From Oikopleura dioica (lineage: Eukaryota > Animalia > Chordata): a DNA stretch of 64,000 nucleotides. The translations under genes and the position numbers were made by a program. Location of the stretch: NCBI GenBank assembly GCA_907165135.1, contig OU015570.1, positions 1,054,001 through 1,118,000 of the forward strand, given 5' to 3'. Shown one piece after another: positions 10,077 to 34,796 of the stretch (the first letter of the stretch is position 1; every line of letters begins with the position of its first letter). The notes beneath the pieces were generated by a model. The model did no database searches and was not told the origin of the DNA. It worked only from the letters and a program-made list of their open reading frames with translations.

Positions 10077-10171
10077 CCGAGATAACATAGAGTCATTTAC
10101 AGGGTTTAATTTTTTTCACCGTTCACCCCCTAACTAAATCTCTTTTAGAATGACCTTTAAAGTATCAGAAG

Positions 10172-13111: not shown

Positions 13112-13505
13112 ACGTAATTTACCCCTGCGAAACCTGCTATATCAACACACTCGTGACCAAAACTGGCGTTACGAAACTGGTTTATTCTGTACAGCAGTTA
13201 ACCAACTTCTCAGATAAAACGCGTGCGACCACAGTGACGACTCAGGCAATCACAGCGGCGGCTTGGACGACGTTGGAGAAGCTGGAGGAAGCTGCGGTCC
13301 CAAAACAGGATAAACCTAAAGACCTGTTAGCCTGAGCAATCTCTTACTTGCCCTTAACAGGACTTCCGTTTCTCTACCTCGAGTTTGGTACGCTCAGCGC
13401 GAATAACGCGAAAGCACTGAGTCGTACTCAACACGAGGTCCGCGTAGGTGTACTCTTCCTCGGGGCGAACCTTTTGGTAGCTCCGATATACACCAACCAT
13501 TACGT
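13112..13505 (-). repeat. LTR copy (duplicate of the 3' LTR at 27547-27940)
   Basis: Same 394-bp ACGTAAT...ATTACGT block. Confidence 0.9.
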
Positions 13506-13533
13506 CCCCCACATTTTATCGAAGTGTATACCT

Positions 13534-14852
13534 TTAGCGGCGCGGTCCTCCTCGGCCGCGTTTTCCGTATCCAGGTCGCGATGGGGCCGGTCGTTTGTAC
13601 GCGTTCGGCGGGCGGAATCCTCCGCTTGTTTCGCCAAGGTCTCGGCCCTCCGTGATTACTCGCCAATTGTAGCACCAATTCGGTCTGCGAACGCGTTCCA
13701 CCAGGTAGTTGTTTGTTTCCTGGTTCCATCTAACTCCCAACGCCCTCAGTTCGCCGTTATTTTGCACCGTTATTATCGGTGCCTCGCCTTGGTGGTCCAG
13801 CGCGAACACGTTGGTCAGTTTGGCCTTGTCCGACCAATTCTTCAGGTACGTAATGGTCTCTTCGACAGACCAGGATTTCATCCCTTCAATTTGACCCAGA
13901 AAGTTCAGAGCCCCTTCGCGCATTTTCACCGCTTCATGGTTGACTCGGGTCACCCATTCCGCGATTTCATCCTCATCCGTCGTTCCAGTTGGCGGGGGTT
14001 CGATCTTAAAATCCTGTCACGCGTGAATTACTGTTTCGGGGAGCCGGTCGATTGATTTTTATCATCTGACGCGGCCGGCTGATAGTGGCAACTGTTCACT
14101 TACCCATGACGGCGCGATGGCTCCCAAGAGCTGTCTTCCGCAGTATAAAGCTTGGTCCACAATGTCATCAGGACTAACTTCAGCCATTGTTTGAGAGATC
14201 AGCTTTTTTAAACCAGCCGTCCCTCCTTCAACGCGAGCTAGACGCATCTTGAAGCCACTGTTTCGGGGGCTGAACGGATCAGTTTCCACATAGAGGTGAG
14301 AGCAATACATGTTTACGCGGTTCGGCGCTTCTAGCCACGCGGTCAGGATGTCTCTTAATTTTGGTTTATTATTTTTCTAAATTATTTTTAGTTTTACCTA
14401 GACGCGCGCAATGTCAGCAGTCGAAATCCAACGGAGGACTGCTTATTCCATCTCTGAAATCCTCAAGTAAGTTATTTTTCTTCCTTGATTTTTACCTCTT
14501 CCTCGAGGAATAACGCGCTTTCTTCCGCGGATGCCACGTTTTTTACGGTCGCTTCCAAACTTGACAAGAACGCGGCAACTTCTCTATCAGTTTCGTTGAT
14601 TTTAAATTCCTTGACGTTTTTTAACGCGTCAATGAATTTATTTAGCCGGACACCGATTCGCAGCGTTATTACCGCTTCACGGCTTGCATCTTCTATGTCA
14701 GCTTGAATGGCGGCCCGCGATTGGCTGGCTGACATCAACCGCGTTTCGTTCCCGAACATGTTTCGCGGCTGATTTTGATTTTTGTGCGCGTTAATGTCGA
14801 GAAAGCTCCCCGGCCTGACCATATCCATGCGGGGTGAATCGCCCCCTGCCAT
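13534..14852 (-). CDS. Accessory gene g1, duplicate copy (4 exons, ~380 aa)
   Basis: Copy of 27969-29287 model. Confidence 0.65.
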
Positions 14853-16711
14853 TCTAGAGAAAAAAATTTTTTTTTTTTTGACAATTTCGTTTAAGTTCTA
14901 TTCCAAATTTTCCAGATTTTTTAAAGTGACCAGTTCTTCTATTCGCGGTTCATTGTTCTGTTCCTTCTTCAGCTTCTAAAATTATGTTTTTAGAAATTTC
15001 GACACGTACGCCGATGCTACTATTGGCCGGAATGACGCGGTCCGCCAGTTGATTGCTCAGTCGAAAGCTACTCGAAATGGGCAACCGCGGGCTTATTCTA
15101 GTGCTCTTTCCAAGTTCGAATTTGACCATGGAGGGCGAGGCGCCAGAATTGTTTTCCGACGTGCCGGCATTCATGACCAAATTGTCGGCCGAAAAGCCCT
15201 CGATGAGATTTTGCTTGCCCGCGTTTCAGACGAACAAATTCAGCGCGGGAGCCTTCGGCTCCGTCTTCGATTCCGCGTCGGGGCCAACGATGTCATTGTC
15301 CCCGTTGATTTCCGATTGCCCAACAAAGGATCAAACAAACAAGATGTTCACGGCCTTGTTTTTGCCATGGACTCCGCGATGTATCAAGTTCGCGATCCTA
15401 AAGTCACCAACGACGCGAAAGTCAAATTTCGCCGCGCCTTCTTGGAGAGGGTTGCTCGCTGGGCGACCTTGACCGTGGTGGCTCTCACCAAATATTGGGT
15501 TCACGCTGGTCCCTGCTCTTTCGAATTAGCCGGAGTGCCCCGAGAGACCGCCGAGGCTCACCCAGATGAATCTACCGCCTATTCCTTTCGCGGGCGAAAT
15601 CCCTGGCTTGTTTTCCTGATCTGGTGCCAGTACATGCATGGGGTGAGTTTCGAATTTATGGATTAAATAAGCATCCTTTTATAACTTAAAGCATCATTTT
15701 AATATTTGCTTTTTAGCGCGTCGTTTCTTGCAATCGAAATCCTGACTGGCCTATGAACCGCGTCCCCATTCAACTACTTTTCGACCGAGATCAACTGAAT
15801 ATCCCTGGGTCGCCCCAGGCGATAATTCTTACCGCGATTAAAGCCGTTCTTGGTGACCAAATCTTTGCCGGTGATGGGCTCCAGCGACGCGACCACGGGG
15901 AGTTTACGCGATTCCATCATGACAACTCTTATAGTGAGTTCCATTTTACAACCTGAATTATTATTTTAACTTATTATTTCAGAGCTCCTCTCACTTAATC
16001 TACGTAATCGCGCTCAACTCTTTCCTATCCCCTCCATCTTGTTTCTCAAGATGCTGGCTTGCTACTTCTACAACAACAACGTATCCCATTCATTTATTGG
16101 CGAGATAACTTACTTTTTTCACCCGCGAGGCCGATTTCTTGCGCGTCTTTCGGCGTTGATTTCGACTTCTTGTCCACTTTTCGCGGCTCAACTTCTGTTT
16201 TTAGGACGAGCAGTATACTTACTACGTCGCCGGGGCCTTTTACCTTATTGGCGTTTACGGTAGCCCTGAATTCGCGCTCTACCATGGCATTTGGAGGCTC
16301 CTGCTCCAGTTCATCCATGACGCAGGCATCTACAAGCCGCTTGTCACTCGCGTTCGTCGCGGAAACGAGGAAGTGAAGTACTTTCCCCGCGATACTTTTT
16401 CAAAAGCCGGTATGAACTTTGAGTTTGTAACCATTTTCTAAATTACACCTCTAGGCCCGGCTCGTCTCTTCCCTCTTGGCACGATCGAGCCTTTCTTGGG
16501 CACGCGTCATCTCTCCTCCCTGTTAGCCCCTGGGGCCTCCATGGATCGATGTCCCTTTTACTCGCTCGATCAGGATGTACCGCCACTGGAGCGTCGAGCG
16601 CAACACGGTCTACGATGGCCTGGCAACCGCGATATTGAGCGACAACAGCAACGCTACCGCGCTATCCCAAGCTTGCTTGGTGGTTTTGGCCGATACCGTG
16701 CTATTGCTTAA
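14411..16711 (+). CDS. Accessory gene g2, duplicate copy (6 exons, ~493 aa)
   Basis: Copy of 28846-31145 model. Confidence 0.6.
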
Positions 16712-17226
16712 GTCCGCAGCTCGTCCTTTCCTGTCTTAGCGCCGAAGTGTTTCTTTGCCCATTCCGCTGCTCTTAACTGTCCCCACGGTATTCGCGATCG
16801 TTTCGTTGGACGCGCGAAAGTGTACTCGCCGTCTTCATCTTTTAAAACGATATTATTTACTGTTCACTGTCGACAGTATCTTATAAATTTGCTATTTTCC
16901 TTGTAATCAAGAAATAAAAGTGAGGGACTATTACCGTTTCGGCTTCTCTTGCGAACGCGTTCCTTTTCATTTCCGCGGTTCTTCGGGCTTGGTTCTTCCT
17001 TTTTTCGCGTATTGCGGCGGTCAGTGTTCATTAGACAGCGGAAACGAGTCTGAATAGCGATAATTTTAATAAATTTTTGGTAATTCGCCGCTTTTGGCGG
17101 GGCTTAAAATAAATCTTGAACTCGGCAGACTGTAACGATCGCGGAGGCTCAACTTTAGGTGACTCGCCGCATTTCTGGCGCTGATTACTTTTCGTAGATG
17201 TTCATTTTTCCTAAATTGTTGTTTCT

Positions 17227-17882
17227 TTAGACGTCTGGCTGCCGTTTCATACCTTCAATCGCGTCAGTTCCCCGATTCTGGTTTCCCGCGTTACCTTCCT
17301 CGTTTTCGCGTCCGGTCAAATCCTGGTAAGAAATTTTTCTGGCCGGTTCAGTCAGTCCTCGCGTCCTGTAGATCATATGGCCATACTGAGAATGGCCAAT
17401 CGCGAAAGTTGGCATCAGCGATCGCTGCAAGTAAAAGTTGTAGCCGCAGATTCCAACTCCCGATTGACGAGTGATCTCCAACAGGCGATTGTTCGTGACC
17501 GCGACCAGATCATGGTACGCGGCTCTGCTTTTTTCCTGGATCGCCAGAACTTTGAAACTCATTACTATCATTCTTACCGCGTCCACTTACCTTGGGTTAG
17601 ATCGTCTACCCCTTTTCTGATTCTGGCGATGATGACCTCAGACGCTGAGGCGTGTCCCGCGTTCACGATCTTCGTATTCGTACTGTTGAAGGTCGCGTTA
17701 CAGCCCGGACACGGTTCCCTTTCGGGACAGCATCCTCGACAAAAGAAGCTACCACACTCGTGGATTCGTGGCTTTCCCGCGAAATCGAGCTCGTGAGTGC
17801 ACTTGAAGCATTTGCCCAAGACCGACGGCGGGAGGTTTTCCCAGATTTTAAGTTCGTTCAACGCGGTTAAACCGTTTTGCAT
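17227..17882 (-). CDS. Accessory gene g3 (RING-like), duplicate copy
   Basis: Copy of 31661-32316 model. Confidence 0.65.
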
Positions 17883-18164
17883 TCTAAATGGGGGGAGGAT
17901 GATCTTGTGGCCAAGTTTACGCGGTTAAATTGGTTGGAAATAGTTAGTTTTCAACTAGGCCTTCTTCGTTTACTCTATTTCTCTTCAAATAAACTTTCCC
18001 GTGACCGACCGTTCTGCGTGCTCATTTTCCGCGAATCACAGCCAATTTCTGTTTTTTATATTTGTTTTAGCTGCTCTCCTGCCTTCCAATTGGACTCGAC
18101 AACTCACCGCTCTTTTCGAGCGGATCTAAACCGACTGAGAGACGCGATTAACAATCCCGCGATT

Positions 18165-19307
18165 ATGCCAACTAACAAACGGACGGTGTCTGAGGCTGGA
18201 CTTGATGCTACCACTTGTACTGTCGCCCAGTCTCCGACTCGAAAACATCCAGCAATTTCTCGCGTCGAATATGTGGATCTGTTGACCCAAGGTGAGCCTT
18301 GTGGTGCGCTTTTCATACTATTAAATTCATTTAAAGGGCCGAGAGTTAAAATTGAACCTCTCGACTACGAGGACTCTCTCGCGATGGAGTTCGATGTGCC
18401 CCGCAAGCTTCCGCGTCCGAAAATTGGGTCAGGCTCTTTGTATGATGCATCGCCTCATACATCTACTCCTGTCGAAACTGGGGCACCATACATTTCACGC
18501 TCAACCACCGGGAACGCTTCTGAGGAGATCGAATTCAAAACTCCTGACGCGACCGCTTTTGACGAAGCACCGAACCGTGTGTCCAAACGTACACGACGCG
18601 AAATCACCACCATAGTCGAGAACATGGAAAAGATTTTCCACCAGAGCCGCGAGTCTCGCGCCTCTGCTCAGGGCTTGTCTCGTCGCGTCTTGTATCGAAG
18701 TCCATCCCGGCCTTCAGAGTATGTGGAGTCCATTTGGCTGAAATGACCCTTCTTTAGGTATATTTACGCGACCATCCCTTCGGAGCTATTTCCTGAGTTT
18801 GAGGTAGATCTCCTTGAGCGATTTTCATCCAAGGAGTTGCACATTTCGCGCGAGTTGGTCCGGATCAGGGCCGATCTTTATTATTCGTCTGATCCGCTCA
18901 AACATCCTTTCCCGCACATTCGAAACTTACTCGTCCACATCGGTGATTTTTCAGTACCTTATTTTATAAACCGCCCCATTTTAGGCTACGCGCTTGATGT
19001 TTCAAAGACGCCGGTGAAAATGCATATCAATCTTACATTCCCGCCTTCTGTCGGACCTACTTCTGGCAGCCCATCTTTCAACTTTCGTAATAGTATTCGC
19101 GAGCTGCTTTCCGCGTACTTGGTGCAGCTGTCTGAATATTACCGCGGCGCCGCCTGTTTGCCAGCTCGCGTTGATGCGCATCGGCATCAGCTGGACTCTC
19201 TGGCGCAAAACGTTCTCGACTATTTATTCGCCGAGGACGTTGGGAAATCATTCAGAATCCCAGTTTCAATTCGAACTGATCTACTCACCACTTCCCATGA
19301 TGAATAA
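18165..19307 (+). CDS. Accessory gene g4, duplicate copy (3 exons, ~352 aa)
   Basis: Copy of 32599-33741 model. Confidence 0.65.
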
Positions 19308-20005
19308 CTTTCTCCGCGAGAACTGCTCCCGAATACTACTTCTACTCCTATTCACCGTTTTCAACCTCACCTGCACTGCTATTTTCATCCAGTACGCGAT
19401 CCACCAGTATGCTACCGAGCTCGACGCCATGCAGTTTGGTGAAATTTCCGACTTTGGGACCTGTAATTTAGCCCGCGTAGTCCCGCGAGTCCATTGGCCA
19501 GATCTGGCCATTGGTCTCGCGCCGGACTCGCGTCGGAAAAATTCAGGTTTCCCAAAGTAGGAAATTTCCCGTCTGAGGAGTTTTTGAATTTCCTGCGCTT
19601 ATATACCCGTTCCCAACAACATTCTAGAGACTGGGTCACGTGATCTTTTCATCCTCAGGCGCTTGTTGTTGAGATTGGTTCTTCTTACTCCGGGGCCTAA
19701 TTCTAGAAACTCCAATGTTTACTATCGACTGTTCTTATAGTAATAGACTAAAGTACAATAATGGAAATCGATTTGTTAGTATAGTCCATAATTGTATTTT
19801 TAATTTCGGATTGATTTATTAGCCTTGGAGAATATACATTGATATACAGATTCAGACTTGTTGGTATGGCATTTTTAGGAGTTAAATCTCATAATCGTCA
19901 GGTTTCTCTGTTTTGATGTCGGGTTCTTCCGCTGGATCCAGTGGAAGAGCCTCTCGTTTCCTTATCGAACCCGCTACAAGGATTTTAGAACTCACTAATT
20001 TTGTG

Positions 20006-21122
20006 CTAAGCAATACCTTTTAAACTGCAGAAGGCACAGGGGGAAGTGCTTGTCATCGGCATTTCGGCTGGTCCCGACAAGGTTGAGCTGTCACCGTCGC
20101 TAGAGAGGATCCTCTCCAGCGCTCCTGTCTTATCCCAAGTTCGGAGATCCTTTTCTGCTTCACTGTCGGTCGAGAGGTCGTAATGTCTGTCGAAACTGTC
20201 GCTGTCCGAGGAAGAGGACTGCCTTTTGAAGCTGACCTCACTGTCGCTGTCGCTGGAGTCGCTGGCCGAATCTTTGAAGATGGACACGACGATCGCCGTG
20301 TCCCTCTTCTGTGGCTGCTGTTTTGCGATGTTGCCCTCCATATCTCCGATTGCTTGGTGGAGACTTTTCCGAAGCGAGACCTTCCAGACTGCTCTGCCGG
20401 ATTTGAATTCCGCTACGGCCCAACCTTTCTGGACCGGCATCACAAGAATCGCTTTGTGACCTTTCCCTCTTACGAAAGCTAGTGCAGTCCACGTGCTCTT
20501 GTCAATCTCATTCAGCGCGTGTTCCACTTTGCTCCAGGTAGAGTCTAACACAAGTCATTAACCTGTTTTGGTGACAATAGGACTTACTCTTGATCAGAAA
20601 GCTTTTCCCCTTTTTATCCTCTGAGTCAGGGAAGGAGCTGGTGATGGACTTCCACGTTTTGCTGAGATTCTCGATCGAGATTCCCAGCTGCTCGTGGAGG
20701 TCCTTTGCCCTGGAGATAATCCGTTCTCGACGACATTCCATTTCTTCCTGGCAAATATAGTCGTCCCAGATGAGGCCGTTTATCTTTCTCACTAGACTTT
20801 CCCAGGTGTTTATGTCGTCGGTTACTCGTACCACTGGTAGCTTCTCGATTGCCGACCACGAATTACGGAACGCTGTCAAGTCGGTGGTGAAATTGTCCGT
20901 GGTGTTCTCAAAATCTTTCCCCCAGTCGCCGATCTTTTTGGTGTCCTCTGCAGCTTCTTCGAGCCACTCCTTGATCGTTTTGGTGAAGTTTAACCCTTCA
21001 TCGCCGGCGAACGCCAGCTTCAGGGCGTTGGAAACAGCAGCTAGGCTTAGTGGAGTTATTAGGCTCGTGACGAGCTTTGTCGCTTCCGAGTCCATCGTAT
21101 CCTCTACCCTTTCCAAGCGCAT
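20006..21122 (-). CDS. YR-element accessory gene, 2 exons (21122-20588, 20544-20006), ~357 aa, with Ser/Asp-rich C-terminal tract
   Basis: 43-bp GTAAGT...TTAG intron (20587-20545) joins two ORFs in frame (phase 1). Confidence 0.65.
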
Positions 21123-21528
21123 TAGAACTTTTTGAGTCTCTGACTGTTTCTAAACTAGACTTAATATCGGTGGTCTGAGACTTTCCTAATGGGCTTGAGC
21201 CGCTTGCTGGATGCCACCCCAATCTATTATTATAGATGGGAAGGGTTATAAACCCTCTTCGCGAATTCTCTTCGTTCTGGCTCATGTCTGAACGAAAAAC
21301 TGTTAGGGTTTTTATAATATCTTTTGGCAGAATAGCAGCCCAAATTTCTGGGCCGCTCTTCCGCCTCCCTAGACGCAGCTGAGCTGGGAATTGGCATGCA
21401 AACGGGCTTCTCGAGCTCTTTTCCTTTTCCTTCTTCTTTTGGAGGAATCACGACTGATTCCAGCTTAACGATCGTTAAGCTGGGACCCGCCTTCGGCTTC
21501 TCCTCCTTGTTTCCATCGAATCCCTTCT

Positions 21529-22494
21529 CTAGTTCTCGCCGTGGGTGATTTTTGCGTGAGCTCTCTCGTTTGTAGAGATGACTTTGAAGGCAGAGCCGTG
21601 TATCGTGTGTTCGAGCTGGTTATTCTTGTACTGGTTGAGCATGAACTCGTTCTTCCAGCGACACAGATTTATGATGTGCTGGTCGGGTACCCCATTCTTG
21701 AGACTCTCTACCACAAAGGAGACCCTCATAGAGTGCCCTGTTGGGCAAACTGCCCAACCCAGGCACTCCGAGACTGTGTGGTAGAAATAATTCATTTTTG
21801 TCGTATTCATTGTTGTCTTCCGCTTGCCGTGAGAGTAGGAGAATAGCTTGCCCTTGGTCCTGGAGGCGATCGCCTCGAGGATCCAGCTTTTAATGTCGAT
21901 CTCAGAATTATCTGTTATCGGGAGCGTAATTACCTCTCGTCTCTCCTTTGTGGAATTGCTTTTCGAAGATCTGAGAGGCATTTGTAAGAAAACTGTGCCG
22001 CTATCTTCTTTCCAGCGGATGTCTTCGATAAACAGGTTTACTATTTCCCCAGTTCTCGCGCCAGTGCAGAAACAAATATAAGAAACTGCGGCCCCGACTT
22101 TCTTATTTATCTGACCTGAGTTATACGCCGTTTCCCAGAATGGAACCATTTCTGAGCGTGCAAAAGCCGGGGCCTGTGTTGGTTCGTAGAGATCTTCGTT
22201 CGATTGAGCCCTCGACCGACTTGATCCCCACTTCGCGATTATCTGTTTCTCGTCTTGAAGCAGGGCCCGGCCCTCGATCTTTTCCCAGAATCGCTCCATC
22301 GACGCGGCCATTGTCTTCCATAGCACTGGGCGAGACGGGTTGTATAGCGTGAAGGTATCCAGGAAGCCGGAGATCGATCGATCTTCGGCCCCTTTTCCTC
22401 TCCACGAGTCCCACGCGTGTTTTAGCCAATCTTCTCTGCTTTCCGACTTGTTCCAGTTTAGCGGATTATCCCTTGAGTTAATTTTCTTAACCAT
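21529..22494 (-). CDS. Tyrosine recombinase (321 aa)
   Basis: Catalytic set R (GARTGE), K (SSKS), HxxR (GHSMR), W and Y (CRWKNEFMLNQY). Confidence 0.92.
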   Translation of the reverse strand: MVKKINSRDNPLNWNKSESREDWLKHAWDSWRGKGAEDRSISGFLDTFTLYNPSRPVLWKTMAASMERFWEKIEGRALLQDEKQIIAKWGSSRSRAQSNEDLYEPTQAPAFARSEMVPFWETAYNSGQINKKVGAAVSYICFCTGARTGEIVNLFIEDIRWKEDSGTVFLQMPLRSSKSNSTKERREVITLPITDNSEIDIKSWILEAIASRTKGKLFSYSHGKRKTTMNTTKMNYFYHTVSECLGWAVCPTGHSMRVSFVVESLKNGVPDQHIINLCRWKNEFMLNQYKNNQLEHTIHGSAFKVISTNERAHAKITHGEN

Positions 22495-22528
22495 TCTAAA
22501 GGGAAAGGTGAAGTCATCGTATCAAAGA

Positions 22529-23153
22529 TTATTGTTCGCAGAGCGAATTTGAATTATTGGCAGGTAAATGGAATGTATAAGTGTTCAATATTACTGGGTC
22601 TTGCCCATAGTTCAGTTGAGAGTTTTCCCGAAGATGTCTTCGAAGCTCAATCGCTTCTTTCCCCAATTTCCTAGATCTTGGAGGCCACGAGCCCATGCGA
22701 GCGTGATCTGTTCGATGTGGTCCAAGGAAACGGTCGAGGGACAATTCGATCGAAATGTCCCTCTGATAATCCTTGCCCAGTGTTGGATATCTTCTTCGTT
22801 TTCGAAGTTGTAGGGTGTGATGGAAGCGAGGAAGGTCTTGAGCGTAGCGGCGTCGATTTGCTTCCCTTGCGATTTCCAGACTATTTTTAGGTCGCTTATC
22901 GCTTATCGCCCCTTTGAGGCGGCGCGCTTGATTTTCCCTTCTCATGAGTAGCGCTGTCCCGCTCGCGGTATAAAAGCGCCCGCTCCCTCGAAATTTTTAC
23001 CAGAAAGAGATCTGGGAGAAATTGATCAATTTCTTCCGATTTTGCTAGAATGTCCCTTGCCGAGCGGCAGAAGAAACTCAAGCCTGAGCTCAAGGAGCTC
23101 AAAAAAGCGATCGGGGTCTTCAAGGACTTCAAGAGAGACCACCCTTCCGACAA
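22529..23153 (-). CDS. Two overlapping unknown ORFs (22896-23153, 22529-22945) upstream of YR
   Basis: ORF track only; the first is partly antisense to the 23050 gene. Confidence 0.3.
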
Positions 23154-23536
23154 CTACACAGCCGAGGAGCCGTGCTTCGAAGCCTTCGGTATCAACAAGG
23201 CCCGCGAGTTACAGTCGGTGCTCGATAATCGAGTCATTCCCATGGTCCGCCGGGTTCACGCGATCTTGCGCAAGCAATCTTGGGTAAGTAACCCCTTACT
23301 TTTGTCCCTTTTTTTATCTAGCACAATTTAAACTAAATTAATTTTAGCAGTGGGAAATGAAGCCTCTCATTCACCCCGAGAACGATCTCCGAAGCACTGC
23401 CTTCCAAGCCAAGCGGCTCCGCGGGGACGTCGTGAAGACCCTCAACCTCATCAAACGACAACGGTTTGCGCATCGATCGATGCCCAACCGGATCACGATG
23501 AAGCCCTTTGAACCACGCCCCAACGAGACACACTAA
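23050..23536 (+). CDS. Antisense accessory gene in YR element, 2 exons (23050-23283, 23348-23536), ~140 aa, basic
   Basis: TGG|GTAAGT donor, 64-bp intron, ATTTTAG acceptor, 62 further open codons; ATG preceded by TGCTAG|A. Confidence 0.6.
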
Positions 23537-23883
23537 GCCGAGTGCAAGATACTCTGTACTTTCTGTTTCCTAATTAAAGCTTATTTCCGGTTCGTTCGAG
23601 CCTGAAAAATCAAGTGCGTTCCTCCAATAAAGGATGAAAATTTTACTTGCGACCCTTTCCTTCTAAAAAACCTTCCCAGCAGGCTTTCATCATTCGCAAC
23701 GCAGCCGCTTTGAACTCATTGTTCCAAATGTTCATTCTAAATGAAGTTGATTAGCAAGATGAAAGTTTTAACTGGAAGTAATTTCAATTAGTCGCAGAAA
23801 GGAAGTTGAGGGGGAGGCTCGACCCGATCGGGCTGAGCCTCCCTTAATCGAAGCAATAATACAAAGTTATTTGTTCTGGTCAG

Positions 23884-24563
23884 CTACCGGGCGAAAGCCT
23901 TCTCTTCCCTTCTTGTTGCTTTTCCATGGCCGTTTCTGGTTCCCTTTGTTCTGATCAGAACGCTGGGAACTCTCTCCTTCCTTCTTGTGTTTCTTTCCGC
24001 CCCTTTTGAAGCTGCCAGACTTGCGTTTTTGCCCGCTGTTTCCGGAGAAGTTGTTCGCGTCCTTTCCAGCGCCAGAGCCTTGAGCAAGGATACTGTAGCG
24101 CTCTCTCTCCTAAAGGAATTGAAACTCGGCGATAGCCTGTATTCTACCTCATCATTTTTGAAGAATTTCTTCATCTTGTGGTATTTTGCAGCATTCTGCA
24201 TTTCTCGCTGAGGTCGACTTCTGTCCTGGTTGACCTCCTGTTGCACGCATTCCTCTGGATCCAGAGAATTGCGCATGTCCTGGCTACCCTCATCTGATCC
24301 CTGCGTAATTCCGTCGATCGTTTTGACGAAATCATCGAGGAGTCGTTCGTCGCACAAGTCTTTGACGAGAGTGCACCATTCGAATCTGCTCATGAGCGGA
24401 TTCTCTCGCATCTGACGGAGTATTCGCTGCATGGTGGGGAAGTCTTCATGATCTTGACCGGCCGCCTTGTCGTATCTGAAAGTCCACTCATTACAGAAAT
24501 TTATCCCAGCTGGGCTTACCGGTGAACGATCTCATACGCTTCGGCGTACTGGAGAGTCCTCAT
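23884..24563 (-). CDS. YR-element accessory gene, 2 exons (24563-24520, 24475-23884), ~211 aa
   Basis: 44-bp GTAAGC...TTTCAG intron in frame; ATG overlaps upstream stop (ATGA). Confidence 0.6.
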
Positions 24564-25197
24564 CTTTTTGCGTCGGTGATCAGTCTGCGAAAGCAGATCC
24601 CGATCTCCCTGAGAGACTCTCCCTGTTCTTGTTCTAGTTTCCGGGAGCCTCGTCCGATTTGGTAGAAACGGCCGGCTTTTGCGTAACTGAAATTGAGCTT
24701 CAGTTCTTCCAGCGCGTACCTCTTCAACTCGGCCTCATTGTGGTCGATCATGCGGGCGACCTCGATCTTTTCTTGTCGGAGTTTTTGTCCTCCTGCTTCG
24801 TCGCTTCGTATTCTGCCAAAATGTTGGCTTCGCCCTCGTCCCAGATCAGCTGGTCGTCGTGATGGAGGTTTTCTCCTCGGCGAAGAGCGCCCTTGATGTC
24901 GTCCAGGCTTTTCCTCTTCGCGTGGAGCACCGCTAGCTTCTTCAGGTTTGCCTTCATCTCTTCGATGATTGTTTCCTGAAATATGTAGATTTCGGATTCG
25001 GGAATCATTACCTTTCTCTCGCGGTCGTCCTCGATTTCGCTGAGTAAGAAACAGTAGCGGTCATCCTTCTGCAGGTCCGCTTGGATTTTCTGATGGTCGC
25101 TTTCCGAGATTGGGGACTCCGTCAACTCTGCTTTAAGCGAGAGTCTGTTCGAGTCCTTCTTGTTTTCCCCTCTCAAGGGAGCGAAGCCGGTACTCAT
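24560..25197 (-). CDS. Two coupled ORFs in YR element: 149 aa (25197-24748) and 63 aa (24751-24560)
   Basis: ATGA stop-start overlaps at 24748-24751 and 24560-24563; charged, helical composition. Confidence 0.55.
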
Positions 25198-25380
25198 CCT
25201 AAAATAGATCTATCTTAGGATGCGATAACAAAATTGTGTATATTGAGAAGGGAAAAAGAGGAAAACGATTGACTACAGGTTCAGGAAATGTAACACTTCA
25301 GAGTCTTGTGTATCTGTTGAGGCCTTCATTGAAGTGTGCTGCTACGGTGCGGGAATCTTATTTAGGTAAAGAGGGTTGGT

Positions 25381-25824
25381 TTAATCGACTAGCGTGCCTA
25401 CTCTACCCATCCCTTCCAGAAACAACTCAGGCCGGAATAAGCAAAGAAAGTTGGTGCCTCTGACATTGTAGACAATTTGGTCCACCAGCTTCCCTACATT
25501 GATCAAGACCTCGAAGGTGTTTTTCCCTGTTGTTTGCCAATCGTTCAGTCTTGCCAAAAGGTCGTGGAACCCAGCGCCGAACGACGCTGAGATCTCGATG
25601 GATTTTGAGAAGATTTTGGACAGAAGTTTCAGGCACACTTTCCAGTCGTCGGATCCGACGACCGATTGTGTGTCCTTCACCTTCATATTTGCCCAAATTC
25701 TTTCTTTTTCCTCGAAGAGATTGTTAGCTGCTGCTACTATCGCATTCTTTTTGTTCTCGAGGTTTGTGTTGGAGCGCCAGCGGCACGCTTCGATGAAGTT
25801 TTGTTTCCTGTCCATTCTGAACAT
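25381..25824 (-). CDS. Unknown 147-aa ORF overlapping the end of the RNase H-MT ORF (possible further small exon)
   Basis: ORF track; TTTTATAG acceptor-like site just upstream. Confidence 0.5.
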   Translation of the reverse strand: MFRMDRKQNFIEACRWRSNTNLENKKNAIVAAANNLFEEKERIWANMKVKDTQSVVGSDDWKVCLKLLSKIFSKSIEISASFGAGFHDLLARLNDWQTTGKNTFEVLINVGKLVDQIVYNVRGTNFLCLFRPELFLEGMGRVGTLVD

Positions 25825-26852
25825 AGATCTATGTTCTCAGGATGATGACCTATAAAAGAAAAGGAAACGTGAGACGGTTCTCTCCAAAATCCAAACTCTT
25901 CCGAGCGGACTTTCGCAGGAAACAGCACCGGATTATTCGTTTCTGGGTCCAGGATCCTGAAATAAGCATTATTTAAGACCTCGGGCCAGATTGGGGACGC
26001 TGTCTCGTGTTCTTCTAGACAGAAAATCCAAAAATTATTCTTCCCCCTCTCCTGGAGAAGCTGAAACGCGAAATCCTCCATAGGTTTTGGTGGGAAAACC
26101 CAGAGGACTTCGGATCCGAAATCCTCTTGGGTGAAGAAATCGACTCCCGCAGCTCCGGCTGTGTCCCTTAATGACCAGAACTTTTCGCACTTCGCATTCG
26201 CTGGGTTAGCAAAAGCGTCTAAAGTGCACTCTTTTCCCAGGGCCTTGTTTAGGTTGAGGAAAGCTTGATTTTTTATCACAGCTTCCTTCGTGTCAATCTT
26301 TCTCGAGGCTTCATCTGCCTCCTGTTCCGTTGTGGAGACCCACTCCATATCCATGGCAATATTATATTTATTTGCCTCCTCATGGATCATCCTGATCCAT
26401 TTTGTTAATTCTGGGCTTTTCCTGCTCCCATGTAAGAAGCAGGTTTCGACTGCCTTGTTATCCTGTTTAAACAGGACTCTGGAGTTTTTGAGAAGATGGC
26501 CGTAATTTTTAACCACGTAGTGGACAGCGTAGGCTTCTTTAATCATGATAGGTTGTTGGGACAGAGGATCCTCTGGATCCCAATAAACCGTTTCCGTAAT
26601 TCCTTTCCCCTTAAACTCGACCCCGGCCGCCCCACTGCTGGCGTCCGTGAAGATTTTGAATTCGACAGGCTTTAAGCCCTTCTTCAGCCATGATCTTTTT
26701 GTTGTGATGTATTTAGCCTGGACCCAGGTTAAAAGTTCATCTTTTAGATCATCTGAGACTGGAAGGGTGTGATTTTGGTCTTGGTTAGTGACTTTCAGCG
26801 CTTCTGTCACTCTGCGGATATAAAGTCGCATATTGTGCACCACCAAAGAGAC
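25737..26852 (-). pseudogene. pol: RNase H + N6-adenine methyltransferase-like domains of DIRS pol, N-terminally truncated
   Basis: IFTDASS, KEAYAV, QDNKAV, ADEASR (RNase H); LDAFANPANAKCEKF, GVDFF, VLWVFPP (DIRS MT); the first ~15 aa of the track ORF come from non-element sequence. Confidence 0.88.
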
Positions 26853-27356
26853 AGCATTATTAAGGTAAAACGGCTCAATCAGGGGTTCGCTGATCAAAAT
26901 GTAACTTTGAAAAAGTGTCCATTTTAAGTTCGGTTTTAATTTTATTTATTTTTCGGGCATTCGTACAATACCGTTGCGCTCTCACTTTTGCGGCGGTGAA
27001 AAATCTCGATCTGAAGCCCCATCAGATCGAGATTTAGCGCGAGGCGTGTATTTTCTGAGACGTACAACACCTACCACACTCCCCGCAGATCAGAGCTTTG
27101 CCGAGCGCGCACCAATCAGAGCGCGGCGTGAAATAAGCGCCCTCACTCGGAAATAAAATGAAGAATAAGGTTAATTAAAATAAACGGGTTTTTTGACGGG
27201 ATTAATGAATTGAAAACTTATTTTTTCTTAATAAGGCGCTTATTTTATAATAATCTTTCAATTATATAATATCATCATAATAATATAGTTACATATAATA
27301 TAGTTTAAATAAATTGATCGATTATTAAACTAAATTTTATTGGCTTTTCCACACTC

Positions 27357-27524
27357 AATCCCGGCTTCAACCACTTCAATATTTGCTTCAACAACTTCGA
27401 TCCTAGCTTTACAGAAGTCAATCCTGGTCGTTCCAGCGTCAATCCCGGCTTCTTAAGATCCGATCCGGGCGTCACTTTCTTCAATTCTAGCTTCTCAGAT
27501 GCCAGTCCCGGCTTTTCAGTTTTC
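27357..27524 (+). repeat. Degenerate 21-bp minisatellite (aatcccggcttc...), 8 units; inverted relatives near 41355-41540 and 42400-42540; copy near 12922-13089
   Basis: Strict 21-nt spacing of aatcc/gatcc/aattc starts. Confidence 0.75.
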
Positions 27525-27546
27525 TATTATTGCTTCTTGAATAATA

Positions 27547-27940
27547 ACGTAATTTACCCCTGCGAAACCTGCTATATCAACACACTCGTGACCAAAACTG
27601 GCGTTACGAAACTGGTTTATTCTGTACAGCAGTTAACCAACTTCTCAGATAAAACGCGTGCGACCACAGTGACGACTCAGGCAATCACAGCGGCGGCTTG
27701 GACGACGTTGGAGAAGCTGGAGGAAGCTGCGGTCCCAAAACAGGATAAACCTAAAGACCTGTTAGCCTGAGCAATCTCTTACTTGCCCTTAACAGGACTT
27801 CCGTTTCTCTACCTCGAGTTTGGTACGCTCAGCGCGAATAACGCGAAAGCACTGAGTCGTACTCAACACGAGGTCCGCGTAGGTGTACTCTTCCTCGGGG
27901 CGAACCTTTTGGTAGCTCCGATATACACCAACCATTACGT
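27547..27940 (-). repeat. 3' LTR (394 bp)
   Basis: Identical to 40949-41342 as read; minus-strand AATAAA at 27616-27621; preceded on minus strand by purine-rich GATAAAATGTGGGGG. Confidence 0.92.
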
Positions 27941-27968
27941 CCCCCACATTTTATCGAAGTGTATACCT

Positions 27969-29287
27969 TTAGCGGCGCGGTCCTCCTCGGCCGCGTTTTC
28001 CGTATCCAGGTCGCGATGGGGCCGGTCGTTTGTACGCGTTCGGCGGGCGGAATCCTCCGCTTGTTTCGCCAAGGTCTCGGCCCTCCGTGATTACTCGCCA
28101 ATTGTAGCACCAATTCGGTCTGCGAACGCGTTCCACCAGGTAGTTGTTTGTTTCCTGGTTCCATCTAACTCCCAACGCCCTCAGTTCGCCGTTATTTTGC
28201 ACCGTTATTATCGGTGCCTCGCCTTGGTGGTCCAGCGCGAACACGTTGGTCAGTTTGGCCTTGTCCGACCAATTCTTCAGGTACGTAATGGTCTCTTCGA
28301 CAGACCAGGATTTCATCCCTTCAATTTGACCCAGAAAGTTCAGAGCCCCTTCGCGCATTTTCACCGCTTCATGGTTGACTCGGGTCACCCATTCCGCGAT
28401 TTCATCCTCATCCGTCGTTCCAGTTGGCGGGGGTTCGATCTTAAAATCCTGTCACGCGTGAATTACTGTTTCGGGGAGCCGGTCGATTGATTTTTATCAT
28501 CTGACGCGGCCGGCTGATAGTGGCAACTGTTCACTTACCCATGACGGCGCGATGGCTCCCAAGAGCTGTCTTCCGCAGTATAAAGCTTGGTCCACAATGT
28601 CATCAGGACTAACTTCAGCCATTGTTTGAGAGATCAGCTTTTTTAAACCAGCCGTCCCTCCTTCAACGCGAGCTAGACGCATCTTGAAGCCACTGTTTCG
28701 GGGGCTGAACGGATCAGTTTCCACATAGAGGTGAGAGCAATACATGTTTACGCGGTTCGGCGCTTCTAGCCACGCGGTCAGGATGTCTCTTAATTTTGGT
28801 TTATTATTTTTCTAAATTATTTTTAGTTTTACCTAGACGCGCGCAATGTCAGCAGTCGAAATCCAACGGAGGACTGCTTATTCCATCTCTGAAATCCTCA
28901 AGTAAGTTATTTTTCTTCCTTGATTTTTACCTCTTCCTCGAGGAATAACGCGCTTTCTTCCGCGGATGCCACGTTTTTTACGGTCGCTTCCAAACTTGAC
29001 AAGAACGCGGCAACTTCTCTATCAGTTTCGTTGATTTTAAATTCCTTGACGTTTTTTAACGCGTCAATGAATTTATTTAGCCGGACACCGATTCGCAGCG
29101 TTATTACCGCTTCACGGCTTGCATCTTCTATGTCAGCTTGAATGGCGGCCCGCGATTGGCTGGCTGACATCAACCGCGTTTCGTTCCCGAACATGTTTCG
29201 CGGCTGATTTTGATTTTTGTGCGCGTTAATGTCGAGAAAGCTCCCCGGCCTGTCCATATCCATGCGGGGTGAATCGCCCCCTGCCAT
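27969..29287 (-). CDS. Accessory gene g1: exons 29287-28931, 28888-28833, 28788-28539, 28448-27969; ~380 aa; RG/P-rich basic C-terminus
   Basis: Three GT-AG introns (42, 44, 90 bp) join three separate ORFs in frame without stops. Confidence 0.7.
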
Positions 29288-31145
29288 TCTAGAGAAAAAA
29301 ATTTTTTTTTTTTTGACAATTTCGTTTAAGTTCTATTCCAAATTTTCCAGATTTTTTAAAGTGACCAGTTCTTCTATTCGCGGTTCATTGTTCTGTTCCT
29401 TCTTCAGCTTCTAAAATTATGTTTTTAGAAATTTCGACACGTACGCCGATGCTACTATTGGCCGGAATGACGCGGTCCGCCAGTTGATTGCTCAGTCGAA
29501 AGCTACTCGAAATGGGCAACCGCGGGCTTATTCTAGTGCTCTTTCCAAGTTCGAATTTGACCATGGAGGGCGAGGCGCCAGAATTGTTTTCCGACGTGCC
29601 GGCATTCATGACCAAATTGTCGGCCGAAAAGCCCTCGATGAGATTTTGCTTGCCCGCGTTTCAGACGAACAAATTCAGCGCGGGAGCCTTCGGCTCCGTC
29701 TTCGATTCCGCGTCGGGGCCAACGATGTCATTGTCCCCGTTGATTTCCGATTGCCCAACAAAGGATCAAACAAACAAGATGTTCACGGCCTTGTTTTTGC
29801 CATGGACTCCGCGATGTATCAAGTTCGCGATCCTAAAGTCACCAACGACGCGAAAGTCAAATTTCGCCGCGCCTTCTTGGAGAGGGTTGCTCGCTGGGCG
29901 ACCTTGACCGTGGTGGCTCTCACCAAATATTGGGTTCACGCTGGTCCCTGCTCTTTCGAATTAGCCGGAGTGCCCCGAGAGACCGCCGAGGCTCACCCAG
30001 ATGAATCTACCGCCTATTCCTTTCGCGGGCGAAATCCCTGGCTTGTTTTCCTGATCTGGTGCCAGTACATGCATGGGGTGAGTTTCGAATTTATGGATTA
30101 AATAAGCATCCTTTTATAACTTAAAGCATCATTTTAATATTTGCTTTTTAGCGCGTCGTTTCTTGCAATCGAAATCCTGACTGGCCTATGAACCGCGTCC
30201 CCATTCAACTACTTTTCGACCGAGATCAACTGAATATCCCTGGGTCGCCCCAGGCGATAATTCTTACCGCGATTAAAGCCGTTCTTGGTGACCAAATCTT
30301 TGCCGGTGATGGGCTCCAGCGACGCGACCACGGGGAGTTTACGCGATTCCATCATGACAACTCTTATAGTGAGTTCCATTTTACAACCTGAATTATTATT
30401 TTAACTTATTATTTCAGAGCTCCTCTCACTTAATCTACGTAATCGCGCTCAACTCTTTCCTATCCCCTCCATCTTGTTTCTCAAGATGCTGGCTTGCTAC
30501 TTCTACAACAACAACGTATCCCATTCATTTATTGGCGAGATAACTTACTTTTTCACCCGCGAGGCCGATTTCTTGCGCGTCTTTCGGCGTTGATTTCGAC
30601 TTCTTGTCCACTTTTCGCGGCTCAACTTCTGTTTTTAGGACGAGCAGTATACTTACTACGTCGCCGGGGCCTTTTACCTTATTGGCGTTTACGGTAGCCC
30701 TGAATTCGCGCTCTACCATGGCATTTGGAGGCTCCTGCTCCAGTTCATCCATGACGCAGGCATCTACAAGCCGCTTGTCACTCGCGTTCGTCGCGGAAAC
30801 GAGGAAGTGAAGTACTTTCCCCGCGATACTTTTTCAAAAGCCGGTATGAACTTTGAGTTTGTAACCATTTTCTAAATTACACCTCTAGGCCCGGCTCGTC
30901 TCTTCCCTCTTGGCACGATCGAGCCTTTCTTGGGCACGCGTCATCTCTCCTCCCTGTTAGCCCCTGGGGCCTCCATGGATCGATGTCCCTTTTACTCGCT
31001 CGATCAGGATGTACCGCCACTGGAGCGTCGAGCGCAACACGGTCTACGATGGCCTGGCAACCGCGATATTGAGCGACAACAGCAACGCTACCGCGCTATC
31101 CCAAGCTTGCTTGGTGGTTTTGGCCGATACCGTGCTATTGCTTAA
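28846..31145 (+). CDS. Accessory gene g2 (antisense to pol): exons 28846-28901, 29429-30077, 30152-30368, 30418-30515, 30639-30843, 30889-31145; ~493 aa; exon 1 uncertain
   Basis: Five GT-AG introns, all frame-consistent, total 1482 nt. Confidence 0.62.
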
Positions 31146-31660
31146 GTCCGCAGCTCGTCCTTTCCTGTCTTAGCGCCGAAGTGTTTCTTTGCCCATTCCG
31201 CTGCTCTTAACTGTCCCCACGGTATTCGCGATCGTTTCGTTGGACGCGCGAAAGTGTACTCGCCGTCTTCATCTTTTAAAACGATATTATTTACTGTTCA
31301 CTGTCGACAGTATCTTATAAATTTGCTATTTTCCTTGTAATCAAGAAATAAAAGTGAGGGACTATTACCGTTTCGGCTTCTCTTGCGAACGCGTTCCTTT
31401 TCATTTCCGCGGTTCTTCGGGCTTGGTTCTTCCTTTTTTCGCGTATTGCGGCGGTCAGTGTTCATTAGACAGCGGAAACGAGTCTGAATAGCGATAATTT
31501 TAATAAATTTTTGGTAATTCGCCGCTTTTGGCGGGGCTTAAAATAAATCTTGAACTCGGCAGACTGTAACGATCGCGGAGGCTCAACTTTAGGTGACTCG
31601 CCGCATTTCTGGCGCTGATTACTTTTCGTAGATGTTCATTTTTCCTAAATTGTTGTTTCT

Positions 31661-32316
31661 TTAGACGTCTGGCTGCCGTTTCATACCTTCAATCGCGTCA
31701 GTTCCCCGATTCTGGTTTCCCGCGTTACCTTCCTCGTTTTCGCGTCCGGTCAAATCCTGGTAAGAAATTTTTCTGGCCGGTTCAGTCAGTCCTCGCGTCC
31801 TGTAGATCATATGGCCATACTGAGAATGGCCAATCGCGAAAGTTGGCATCAGCGATCGCTGCAAGTAAAAGTTGTAGCCGCAGATTCCAACTCCCGATTG
31901 ACGAGTGATCTCCAACAGGCGATTGTTCGTGACCGCGACCAGATCATGGTACGCGGCTCTGCTTTTTTCCTGGATCGCCAGAACTTTGAAACTCATTACT
32001 ATCATTCTTACCGCGTCCACTTACCTTGGGTTAGATCGTCTACCCCTTTTCTGATTCTGGCGATGATGACCTCAGACGCTGAGGCGTGTCCCGCGTTCAC
32101 GATCTTCGTATTCGTACTGTTGAAGGTCGCGTTACAGCCCGGACACGGTTCCCTTTCGGGACAGCATCCTCGACAAAAGAAGCTACCACACTCGTGGATT
32201 CGTGGCTTTCCCGCGAAATCGAGCTCGTGAGTGCACTTGAAGCATTTGCCCAAGACCGACGGCGGGAGGTTTTCCCAGATTTTAAGTTCGTTCAACGCGG
32301 TTAAACCGTTTTGCAT
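31661..32316 (-). CDS. Accessory gene g3: RING-like zinc finger protein, exons 32316-32025 and 31983-31661, at least ~204 aa
   Basis: CxxC-x14-CGS-xx-CxxC-x6-CxxC; 41-bp GTAAGT...CAAAG intron in frame. Confidence 0.7.
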
Positions 32317-32598
32317 TCTAAATGGGGGGAGGATGATCTTGTGGCCAAGTTTACGCGGTTAAATTGGTTGGAAATAGTTAGTTTTCAACTAGGCCTTCTT
32401 CGTTTACTCTATTTCTCTTCAAATAAACTTTCCCGTGACCGACCGTTCTGCGTGCTCATTTTCCGCGAATCACAGCCAATTTCTGTTTTTTATATTTGTT
32501 TTAGCTGCTCTCCTGCCTTCCAATTGGACTCGACAACTCACCGCTCTTTTCGAGCGGATCTAAACCGACTGAGAGACGCGATTAACAATCCCGCGATT

Positions 32599-33741
32599 AT
32601 GCCAACTAACAAACGGACGGTGTCTGAGGCTGGACTTGATGCTACCACTTGTACTGTCGCCCAGTCTCCGACTCGAAAACATCCAGCAATTTCTCGCGTC
32701 GAATATGTGGATCTGTTGACCCAAGGTGAGCCTTGTGGTGCGCTTTTCATACTATTAAATTCATTTAAAGGGCCGAGAGTTAAAATTGAACCTCTCGACT
32801 ACGAGGACTCTCTCGCGATGGAGTTCGATGTGCCCCGCAAGCTTCCGCGTCCGAAAATTGGGTCAGGCTCTTTGTATGATGCATCGCCTCATACATCTAC
32901 TCCTGTCGAAACTGGGGCACCATACATTTCACGCTCAACCACCGGGAACGCTTCTGAGGAGATCGAATTCAAAACTCCTGACGCGACCGCTTTTGACGAA
33001 GCACCGAACCGTGTGTCCAAACGTACACGACGCGAAATCACCACCATAGTCGAGAACATGGAAAAGATTTTCCACCAGAGCCGCGAGTCTCGCGCCTCTG
33101 CTCAGGGCTTGTCTCGTCGCGTCTTGTATCGAAGTCCATCCCGGCCTTCAGAGTATGTGGAGTCCATTTGGCTGAAATGACCCTTCTTTAGGTATATTTA
33201 CGCGACCATCCCTTCGGAGCTATTTCCTGAGTTTGAGGTAGATCTCCTTGAGCGATTTTCATCCAAGGAGTTGCACATTTCGCGCGAGTTGGTCCGGATC
33301 AGGGCCGATCTTTATTATTCGTCTGATCCGCTCAAACATCCTTTCCCGCACATTCGAAACTTACTCGTCCACATCGGTGATTTTTCAGTACCTTATTTTA
33401 TAAACCGCCCCATTTTAGGCTACGCGCTTGATGTTTCAAAGACGCCGGTGAAAATGCATATCAATCTTACATTCCCGCCTTCTGTCGGACCTACTTCTGG
33501 CAGCCCATCTTTCAACTTTCGTAATAGTATTCGCGAGCTGCTTTCCGCGTACTTGGTGCAGCTGTCTGAATATTACCGCGGCGCCGCCTGTTTGCCAGCT
33601 CGCGTTGATGCGCATCGGCATCAGCTGGACTCTCTGGCGCAAAACGTTCTCGACTATTTATTCGCCGAGGACGTTGGGAAATCATTCAGAATCCCAGTTT
33701 CAATTCGAACTGATCTACTCACCACTTCCCATGATGAATAA
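32599..33741 (+). CDS. Accessory gene g4 (antisense): exons 32599-32725, 32771-33152, 33192-33741; ~352 aa; S/T/P-rich N-half with a VKIE SUMO-consensus-like motif
   Basis: 45-bp and 39-bp GT-AG introns; the second fuses ORFs 32311..33180 and 33271..33741 in frame. Confidence 0.7.
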
Positions 33742-34796
33742 CTTTCTCCGCGAGAACTGCTCCCGAATACTACTTCTACTCCTATTCACCGTTTTCAACC
33801 TCACCTGCACTGCTATTTTCATCCAGTACGCGATCCACCAGTATGCTACCGAGCTCGACGCCATGCAGTTTGATATTTCGTCTTTCCGCCGCGTCCTCGG
33901 GCTCGATAGCTACGTTCCCCAGATTATTTCTGGTGTTGATCCTGTAAGTTTTCCAATTTAACTCTCATTTTAGTCATCTTTATAATTATTTCTTTGGCTT
34001 AACTAACGCGAATTTCAGGTTCCCCGACGCGTCTTCCAACGGAACTACCACCACTCTGGAACTGCCCGATCGCGACACGGTCGATCCGCGTATTCGCCGA
34101 ACTACTACGTGCCCATGCCCGCCTATGGAGCTCCCGAGGCTCCCCTTACTCTTGGCGGTGCTTCACCTTACAGATGGTACATTTATATTTTCTCCGATCA
34201 TTTTCTTATTTTACGCATTTAGGGCACTCTTCGCGCTTTTCCTCATCATTCTCGTCCCTACTCTCATCTGCTGCTGCGGCCGCCCTGTAATCAGCGTCCT
34301 CAAGCACGTCAACCGTACTTTCGCCAACCTTGACTTCAACTTCGGCGAGTCTGCCGACTCCTACGAAGATGGGCCCGAGTACGAGCAGGTCAGAGCGCTT
34401 CAGCGACAAAACGATGCCAATCGAAAGATGATTCGTGCTCGAAAACAACAGGATCAGCTCAACCGCGAACTCTCTCGACTGCCTCCTACCGCGGTTGTAC
34501 CTTCTACCGTCGCTACTCCTCCACCGCGCTATTCCCGTGTTGACGAAGCCGTCCGAGGCGTTGACGCCGCCGCTGCCACGTCCAGATCTGCGTCTCCAGT
34601 ACACGTGGCACCTCTGAGCCGCAGCTCAGCTCGATCCTCGCGCACTACTTCTAGAGCCGCGTCCTTCCGCCCCGCGACTCGGACTTCGTCCATTGTTTCC
34701 ATCGTCGAGCTTCCTGATGACTACGTCGAGCCTATCGCCGATGACAATTCTGTTTATGTTCCCCCTGCTGGTAGCTCCTCCGACGCTTGGGTTTAA
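33731..34796 (+). CDS. Accessory gene g5 (antisense): exons 33731-33943, 34019-34176, 34223-34796; ~314-aa membrane protein with two hydrophobic segments and CCC
   Basis: 75-bp and 46-bp introns in frame; ILLLLLFTVFNLTCTAIFIQYAI and WALFALFLIILVPTLICCCG. Confidence 0.7.

Follow-up and report, generated by a model that had tools for sequence, protein, structure and literature searches.

The stretch of Oikopleura dioica DNA analysed here (hereafter the window; 64,000 nt of contig OU015570.1, positions 1,054,001 to 1,118,000 of the forward strand) contains, at 19439-26852 on its minus strand, a fragment of a tyrosine recombinase (YR) retroelement. Read on that strand, the fragment starts within the pol gene, in front of RNase H (RH) and a Dam-like methyltransferase (MT), and continues with an accessory gene, ORFa, a second accessory gene, ORFb, that is split into several short open reading frames (ORFs), a spacer, a small conserved coding segment, the YR gene, a further gene at the place of ORFc, and a 3' non-coding region. 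It is very probably the 3' 7.4 kb of a 5'-truncated, single-copy giant retrotransposon of the DIRS/PAT type that belongs to an Oikopleura-specific group. Jointly with this assignment, we are confident that the lineage carries ORFa, ORFb, the small ORF, YR and ORFc in that order and that what looks like a chain of short genes connected by ATGA overlaps is a broken ORFb. An initial annotation of the window had described a complex YR retroelement with accessory genes; the conserved genes that the lineage has in addition, some between pol and YR and another beyond YR, bear this out, but the copy is not full length, with both gag and the reverse transcriptase (RT) missing.

The features described below lie on the minus strand unless indicated otherwise. 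The C-terminal part of pol (25737-26852) belongs to a listed RH/MT ORF, 25737-26897, that runs past 26852 into flanking DNA. It matches RT_RNaseH under the Pfam cut-off (E 4.4e-4 in the fragment) and the Dam family PF05869, a hit that came up in each of the four elements tested (with E 0.05 for the window; 28.6 bits, with a cut-off of 28.1, in the relative L055), and is 54% identical to the pol of L064. The latter is one of the closer relatives, the metagenome or assembly contigs L059, L060, L061 and L064 (L060 comes from another assembly, GCA_977009715.1), which are 48-55% identical to the fragment in YR or RH/MT. The RT domain RVT_1 is present in relatives whose RH/MT is 43-54% identical and absent from the truncated window copy. 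The YR ORF, of 321 amino acids (aa; 21529-22494), contains a Phage_integrase domain (PF00589; E 3.9e-12, 46.7 bits, cut-off 27.1) and is 30-44% identical to 20 matches in the same genome and 48-55% identical to L059, L060 and L061. Past a break at the A5 run 21553-21549, its C-terminal tail (21311-21553) is read in a different frame: the end of the 433-aa YR of L059 matches window positions 21394-21311 in a frame other than that of the YR ORF. By homology, the combination of YR, RT and RH (RT from relatives alone) and a Dam-like MT places the group with the DIRS1/PAT superfamilies.

Between the RH-MT stop and the YR start, the gap that had been given as 3.2 kb measures 3,242 nt, and the ORFs of 147, 149, 63 and about 211 aa reported for it are all present on the minus strand, the last of these being a 182-aa ORF plus an upstream exon; ORFs of 204 and 181 aa follow YR. 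In each of about 18 diverged relatives in the same genome, whose pol and YR show 30-47% identity, RH/MT and YR are 1.5-2.7 kb apart. The order and orientation of ORFa, ORFb, the small ORF and the post-YR gene are the same across relatives from this genome, another assembly and metagenomes, and the order in the lineage after gag and pol is ORFa, ORFb, small conserved ORF, YR, ORFc. One contig, L064 (4840-6467; ENA sample ERZ27250226), has no YR, its ORFb running straight into post-YR-gene sequence, and is a deletion derivative. At least eight relatives conserve a gag-like ORF1 as a gene of its own upstream of pol, so that ORFb is additional to gag; the possibility that ORFb is a relocated gag is thereby ruled out. 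Directly upstream of the gag-like ORF, the most intact relative carries a 1,401-aa ORF (open frame 1,756 aa; L056 52-4257, G000 C5:14565360-14569562) that has no Pfam match and, in a search of its own genome, matches only itself; it is no more than a candidate member of the family.

The first of the extra genes, ORFa (147 aa, 25381-25824), overlaps the end of pol by 88 nt. It is 40% identical over 141 aa to L064 4037-4459 (E 3e-32), where the overlap with the pol end is found as well, and this homolog identifies ORFa as a real conserved gene. ORFa yielded no Pfam match, no paralog in the genome and no usable protein-atlas hit, and had no detectable similarity to the ORFs at the same position in the C5 (134 aa) and C4 (147 aa) relatives.

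The next three ORFs are, by homology, a single gene, ORFb, which lowers the count of about six extra genes in the initial annotation. In the relatives, ORFb is one continuous ORF (346 aa in a single frame in L064, 431 aa in C5 and 352 aa in C3). The 149-aa piece (24748-25197), an N-terminal coiled-coil part, is 50% identical to the start of the L064 ORF. The 63-aa piece (24560-24751), with tblastn matches in about 15 in-genome relatives, continues it in the same frame in L064, and its homology reaches some 13 codons upstream of its own ATG. The third piece starts with a short exon (24520-24563), whose start lies in the second ATGA overlap and which is collinear with the relatives once a 44-nt intron is skipped, and proceeds through a second exon (23884-24475) comprising a helical domain and a basic tail, 43% identical to L064 and a member of the ORFb alignments; the ORF listed for this piece, 23884-24432, encodes 182 aa, or about 211 aa with the upstream exon. 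None of the ORFb pieces has a Pfam match. A 138-aa ORF at 22529-22945 is a spurious frame, discussed below.

The two ATGA overlaps that had been pointed out are indeed present and exact, at 24751-24748 (the 149/63 junction) and 24563-24560 (between the 63-aa ORF and the next one). Compared to the single-ORF relatives, the frame switches at the A5 runs 24786-24782 and 24569-24565. After the first break, about 35 nt upstream of the ATGA, the old frame stays open for 14 codons before it ends in a TGA, which shares bases with a conserved internal Met codon; at the second break, the A5 run is directly followed by a Met codon. Two more frame changes coincide with A5 runs, one at the YR tail described above and the other near 21133-21129, within the post-YR gene's 5' part, where no GT/GC/GA-AG intron candidate of at least 29 nt could account for the change near 21130. 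Of the 23 A runs in the 7.4-kb fragment that reach a length of at least five, four hold the four breaks; we estimate the chance of this at about 1e-5 to 1e-4, with a tolerance of about 10 nt. No ATGA is found at the ORFb junctions of the in-genome relatives examined. Near-identical repeats beside the fragment differ chiefly in homopolymer length (T6/T5 in a 7-kb pair, A5/A4 in a 2.7-kb pair), and A6 runs are scarcer in the fragment (1 of 23) than in the relatives' short-read contigs. The assembly is, presumably, Nanopore-based. Given that homology passes through both junctions, that the breaks lie at A5 runs and that the relatives lack ATGA, we conclude from these comparisons that the overlaps are by-products of one-base frame breaks, either real slippage mutations or residual long-read homopolymer errors, and not a device of translational coupling. 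Evolved stop-start coupling or programmed frameshifting appears improbable.

Upstream of YR lies a small conserved coding segment (22612-22902), 40-45% identical over 64-67 aa to L059 626-817, L061 293-484 and L060 361-561, which start with ATG where the window has Leu. Its frame differs from that of the 138-aa ORF, which covers the conserved segment in the wrong frame. The small ORF has no Pfam match.

The post-YR gene (20006-21285, stop at 20006) had been proposed as a spliced gene of about 357 aa, and the model with a 43-nt intron at 20587-20545 does give 357 aa. The gene is conserved in L059, L061 and L064: its N-terminus and last exon match continuous ORFs of these relatives (2316-3122 in L059). 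The start is likely ATG 21285, upstream of the one originally chosen. No Pfam match and no usable protein-atlas hit was obtained for its product.

Both predicted introns of the fragment, that in ORFb (44 nt, 24476-24519, GTAAGC...TTTCAG) and that in the post-YR gene (43 nt, GTAAGT..TGTTAG), have a GTAAG donor, a TAATGA-type motif and a pyrimidine-rich YAG acceptor. Exons were searched singly, and joined translations served only for judging frame continuity. When the 44-nt interval is skipped, ORFb stays in frame and aligns without gaps to its single-ORF homologs; when the 43-nt interval is skipped, the post-YR product is collinear with L059 save for a one-residue gap. The relatives, including L064 and those in the same genome for the ORFb intron, are without these two introns. 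At least two predicted introns (44 and 43 nt) are therefore supported by their fit to homology, and of the introns in the initial annotation these two stand on collinearity with relatives; a third, of 64 nt, is predicted in a plus-strand model.

Predicted introns are also found in relatives of the fragment. A multi-copy family in the genome has an intron at another site of ORFb, which is kept in six sub-lineages with conserved flanks, the intron itself being diverged and varying from 44 to 87 nt; in one sub-lineage, it is in frame and open, so that an ORF finder reads through it. The intron-bearing copies are separate insertions on different chromosomes, with 69-88% amino-acid identity between the copies compared. 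A shared intron site in separate, diverged insertions implies that introns outlast copying in this group, which in turn suggests unspliced RNA as the template. At the family level, the idea of a gene-rich YR retroelement with introns is supported.

The terminal organization of the group was read from the multi-copy family, the window copy being without its 5' end. Multi-copy relatives have split direct repeats of the PAT type (A1...B1A2...B2), with A of 267 bp at the 5' end; near the 3' end, a 45-bp B precedes a second A, and a last B closes the element. In the C1 copy, A1 lies at 13148111-13148377, B1A2 at 13162227-13162538 and B2 at 13162670-13162714. Between terminal repeats, in-genome relatives measure about 13.4-14.6 kb. 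Neither inverted terminal repeats nor any internal complementary region was found in L055 or in the C5 element, and the window has a 128-nt 3' palindrome alone.

The multi-copy family itself is young and about 14.6 kb long, represented by C1:13148111-13162714 and about six sister copies (C4:3347004.., C5:358428.., C4:4056886.., C1:7996224.., C4:14190609.. and C3:1477569..), pairs of which are about 99.3% identical. Upstream of the gag-like gene, its members have some 7.5 kb with further ORFs. In three copies (C5:367250.., C4:4056483.. and C3:1477163.., at position 2202/2203 of each oriented merged locus), a TAA stop in pol is directly followed by ATG (CAATAAATGCAG), such that RH and MT form two abutting ORFs.

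Clustering of all ORFs at the relatives' loci puts the ORFb family between pol and YR in all lineages. Between diverged copies, the ratio of nonsynonymous to synonymous substitution rates (dN/dS) is 0.05-0.13 for ORFb, 0.054 for pol and 0.037 for YR; judging by these ratios, ORFb is under purifying selection. A profile of its central domain retrieved 61 proteins from 1.84 billion representatives, and all the named ones come from O. dioica (OKI2018_I69). A word search brought up a single outside relative, the marine metagenome contig L058, with the order ORFb-YR-ORFc. AlphaFold (AF2) models of an ORFb homolog, with pLDDT of 78 for the whole protein and 85 for the central domain, predict an antiparallel coiled-coil hairpin as well as a small beta-hairpin and a helical domain; the basic tail, of the RGG type and rich in Arg and Gly, is predicted to be disordered. 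A profile search against the PDB gave nothing significant. From this predicted architecture alone, one might guess at a role in nucleic-acid binding or particle assembly.

The spacer of about 1 kb (22903-23883) between ORFb and the small segment differs from the rest of the fragment. It has no similarity at the DNA or protein level to L059, L060, L061 or L064, a search of its own genome returned only the self match, and its AT skew is near 0, compared to about -0.2 in the surroundings. On the plus strand it includes a two-exon antisense model of 140 aa (23050-23536; exons 23050-23283 and 23348-23536) with a 64-nt intron (23284-23347, GTAAGT...TTTTAG). The exons are in frame, a TAG stands one base before the ATG and an AATAAA downstream. 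The model, which had been presented as a spliced plus-strand gene, could be reproduced and is gene-like, but it lies in a spacer that the relatives lack, and no homolog in the genome or relatives and no Pfam match for its exons was found. It may be a lineage-specific acquisition or a product of chance.

The fragment fills precisely the interval of 7,414 bp that separates both copies of a direct repeat of 7,021 bp (12418-19438 and 26853-33872). In a self-comparison of the window, these copies are 99.97% identical, a single substitution and the length of one T6/T5 run being their only differences; they are 14,435 bp apart, with the fragment exactly at their junction. A DNA search of its own genome returned only the fragment itself. 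Position 26852, which lies in the linker in front of RNase H, is where similarity to pol of the relatives sets in, and no RT or gag coding sequence was found upstream of the fragment's RNase H; because pol homology thus starts at the edge of the direct repeat, gag and RT are missing from this copy. At the other end, a non-coding region (19439-20005) with conserved blocks and the 128-nt palindrome (19441-19568) is collinear with the 3' region of L060, palindrome included, to about 19440. The palindrome adjoins the junction with a gypsy fragment, where similarity to L060 fades, so that the 3' end looks native. Each copy of the 7,021-bp segment consists of 694 bp of flank, a 394-bp long terminal repeat (LTR) and 5.9 kb from the 3' part of a neighbouring LTR element. 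The arrangement has the appearance either of a tandem segmental duplication that captured filler or of a mis-assembly, and the locus is probably a dead copy.

As for the surroundings, the neighbouring LTR element is 13.8 kb long, with LTR copies at 13112-13505, 27547-27940 and 40949-41342. The whole 31-kb transposon nest is flanked by a 2.7-kb non-coding low-complexity segment (9769-12456 and 43343-46021, 99.5% identical), the last 39 bp of which also precede copy 2 of the 7-kb segment, and a 75-nt repeat occurs at 9696, 12461 and 26896. On the plus strand, AT and GC skew are both negative from 13 to 41 kb of the window. Elsewhere, there is a tandem array of about four units of 89-93 nt at 62878-63253, and dense nested inverted repeats at 2051-2775 and 53537-56125 (arms of 100-176 nt, up to 99% complementarity) are probably miniature inverted-repeat transposable element-like or foldback elements.

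Three other explanations of the locus can be set against a truncated member of a gene-rich family. That of the initial annotation, an intact DIRS-like element with about six separate accessory genes, in which the 149-, 63- and 211-aa cistrons are coupled by termination-reinitiation at ATGA, can appeal to the exactness of the overlaps at both junctions, to the known stop-start coupling of the non-LTR retrotransposon SART1, and to C3:1458334 and the multi-copy family, where the N-terminal coiled-coil part of ORFb is a separate ORF, too. Yet L064 and several others encode all three pieces as one ORF, homology crosses both junctions and, at the first, extends upstream of the ATG, all four frame breaks fall at A5 runs, no relative has ATGA at the junctions, and the copy is without gag and RT; we consider this explanation very unlikely. 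Only slightly less remote is a canonical DIRS element whose extra ORFs are unrelated DNA, that is, nested insertions or captured host fragments. The fragment does sit in a rearranged transposon nest, and the spacer with its antisense ORF is both unique in the genome and absent from the relatives that cover the interval. The other extra genes (ORFa, ORFb, the small ORF and the post-YR gene), however, recur in the same order and orientation in relatives and show purifying selection, and neither repeats nor duplicated target sites flank them. What the relatives lack is the spacer, not ORFa, ORFb or the post-YR gene, and an origin as unrelated DNA can apply solely to the spacer and its antisense ORF.

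The third explanation concerns the assembly: truncation, 7-kb duplication and frame breaks might all be artefacts of a collapsed or mis-joined repeat area, within the male-specific region, in a long-read assembly, the real element being intact. The near-identity of the 7,021-bp copies, in which one of the two differences is a homopolymer length, and the scarcity of A6 runs relative to the short-read contigs favour such an artefact; the junctions, however, are clean and unique, and neither the set of genes nor its conservation hinges on how the flanks were put together. We regard it as unlikely, though worth keeping in mind. In the preferred reading, that of a 5'-truncated copy from a gene-rich family, several points remain uncomfortable. 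The post-YR gene of the window has no significant similarity to ORFc of C5 or L058 in BLASTP or hhalign comparisons, and the two are equated by their position and a weak pattern at the C-terminus. For ORFb, fold searches with two AF2 models retrieved coiled-coil hairpins at Z 10-12 and, at Z below 6, helical bundles, all of a generic kind and with no capsid-like match among them. The copy is single and truncated, and its four frame breaks may be either real mutations or assembly errors.

The start codons of the element genes are often preceded by what resembles a splice acceptor. Among gene starts from the window, in-genome relatives and outside contigs, 15 of 38 have T[TC]AG ending no more than 2 nt from the ATG, compared to 48 of the 1,346 ATGs that these sequences contain besides (3.6%; p ~1e-12). 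In L055, YAG-A-ATG is the reading at each of the six gene starts examined. Within the window, the ATGs at 25197, 22494 and 21285 have the motif in front of them, and the antisense ATG at 23050 has a looser form. Transcripts of O. dioica operons are resolved by spliced-leader trans-splicing at unpaired AG acceptors (PMC6883708). The genes of these elements could be expressed likewise from a long primary transcript, by way of splice acceptors directly before the start codons; a sub-mRNA for each gene would then arise through spliced-leader trans-splicing, as in host operons, or through cis-splicing from a leader, as in the Tor elements of the same host (PMC4402516). The unspliced RNA would be the copying template, which would account for the persistence of introns, and ORFb might serve the element by binding nucleic acid or in assembly. 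Taken to its full extent, this proposal would make the group operon-like giant YR elements, with 6-8 or more genes per RNA, an acceptor before each ATG and the RGG-tailed ORFb as an essential new component of retrotransposition, a view that we offer as a tentative possibility.

DIRS1-like elements of Oikopleura were reportedly first described by Volff et al. in 2004. The group shares with DIRS1-like elements the tyrosine recombinase, a pol with RT (in relatives alone) and predicted RNase H and Dam-like MT domains, and, in relatives, a gag-like ORF1 upstream. Described DIRS1-like elements, however, have 4.0-6.3 kb and three ORFs, and their YR abuts pol or overlaps it (Piednoel et al. 2011, PMC3266345). 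Here, in contrast, pol and YR are 3.2 kb apart, with three to four conserved genes in between, YR is followed by a further gene, the relatives reach about 13.4-14.6 kb, and no inverted terminal repeats or internal complementary region was found in the elements searched. PAT-like elements, the sister of the DIRS1-like ones, share the split direct repeats of the multi-copy relatives and the predicted MT domain; the Oikopleura elements differ from them in size and accessory gene content, and the 5' end of the window copy itself is missing. The Tor elements of Oikopleura (Ty3/gypsy) express env from spliced or internally initiated sub-mRNAs, and their genomic RNA keeps introns (Henriet et al. 2015, PMC4402516). 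With Tor elements and complex retroviruses, the present group has in common that a retroelement carries an extra gene, and Tor does so in the same host, but Tor has a DDE integrase in place of YR and has LTRs, and the accessory genes described here are more numerous and unrelated to env. Genomic copies of Penelope-like elements are said to keep spliceosomal introns, a finding that is attributed to Arkhipova et al. in 2003; those elements, however, have a GIY-YIG endonuclease and a telomerase-like RT, whereas here the introns are in accessory genes and their positions vary between lineages.

The genome of Oikopleura dioica is among the smallest of animals. YR retrotransposons have been described as compact three-gene elements, and the Oikopleura group is two to three times larger, with several conserved genes of unassigned role that appear to be under purifying selection, retained introns, and acceptor-type signals before genes. 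For the reading of gene models in this assembly, the locus illustrates that apparent ATGA coupling and chains of short ORFs can come from frame breaks at homopolymer runs. If the proposed splicing-based expression is true, the group would represent a retroelement that exploits the operon and trans-splicing system of its host, and it would offer a handle on how RNA is packaged and copied in YR retroelements, whose life cycle is poorly known.

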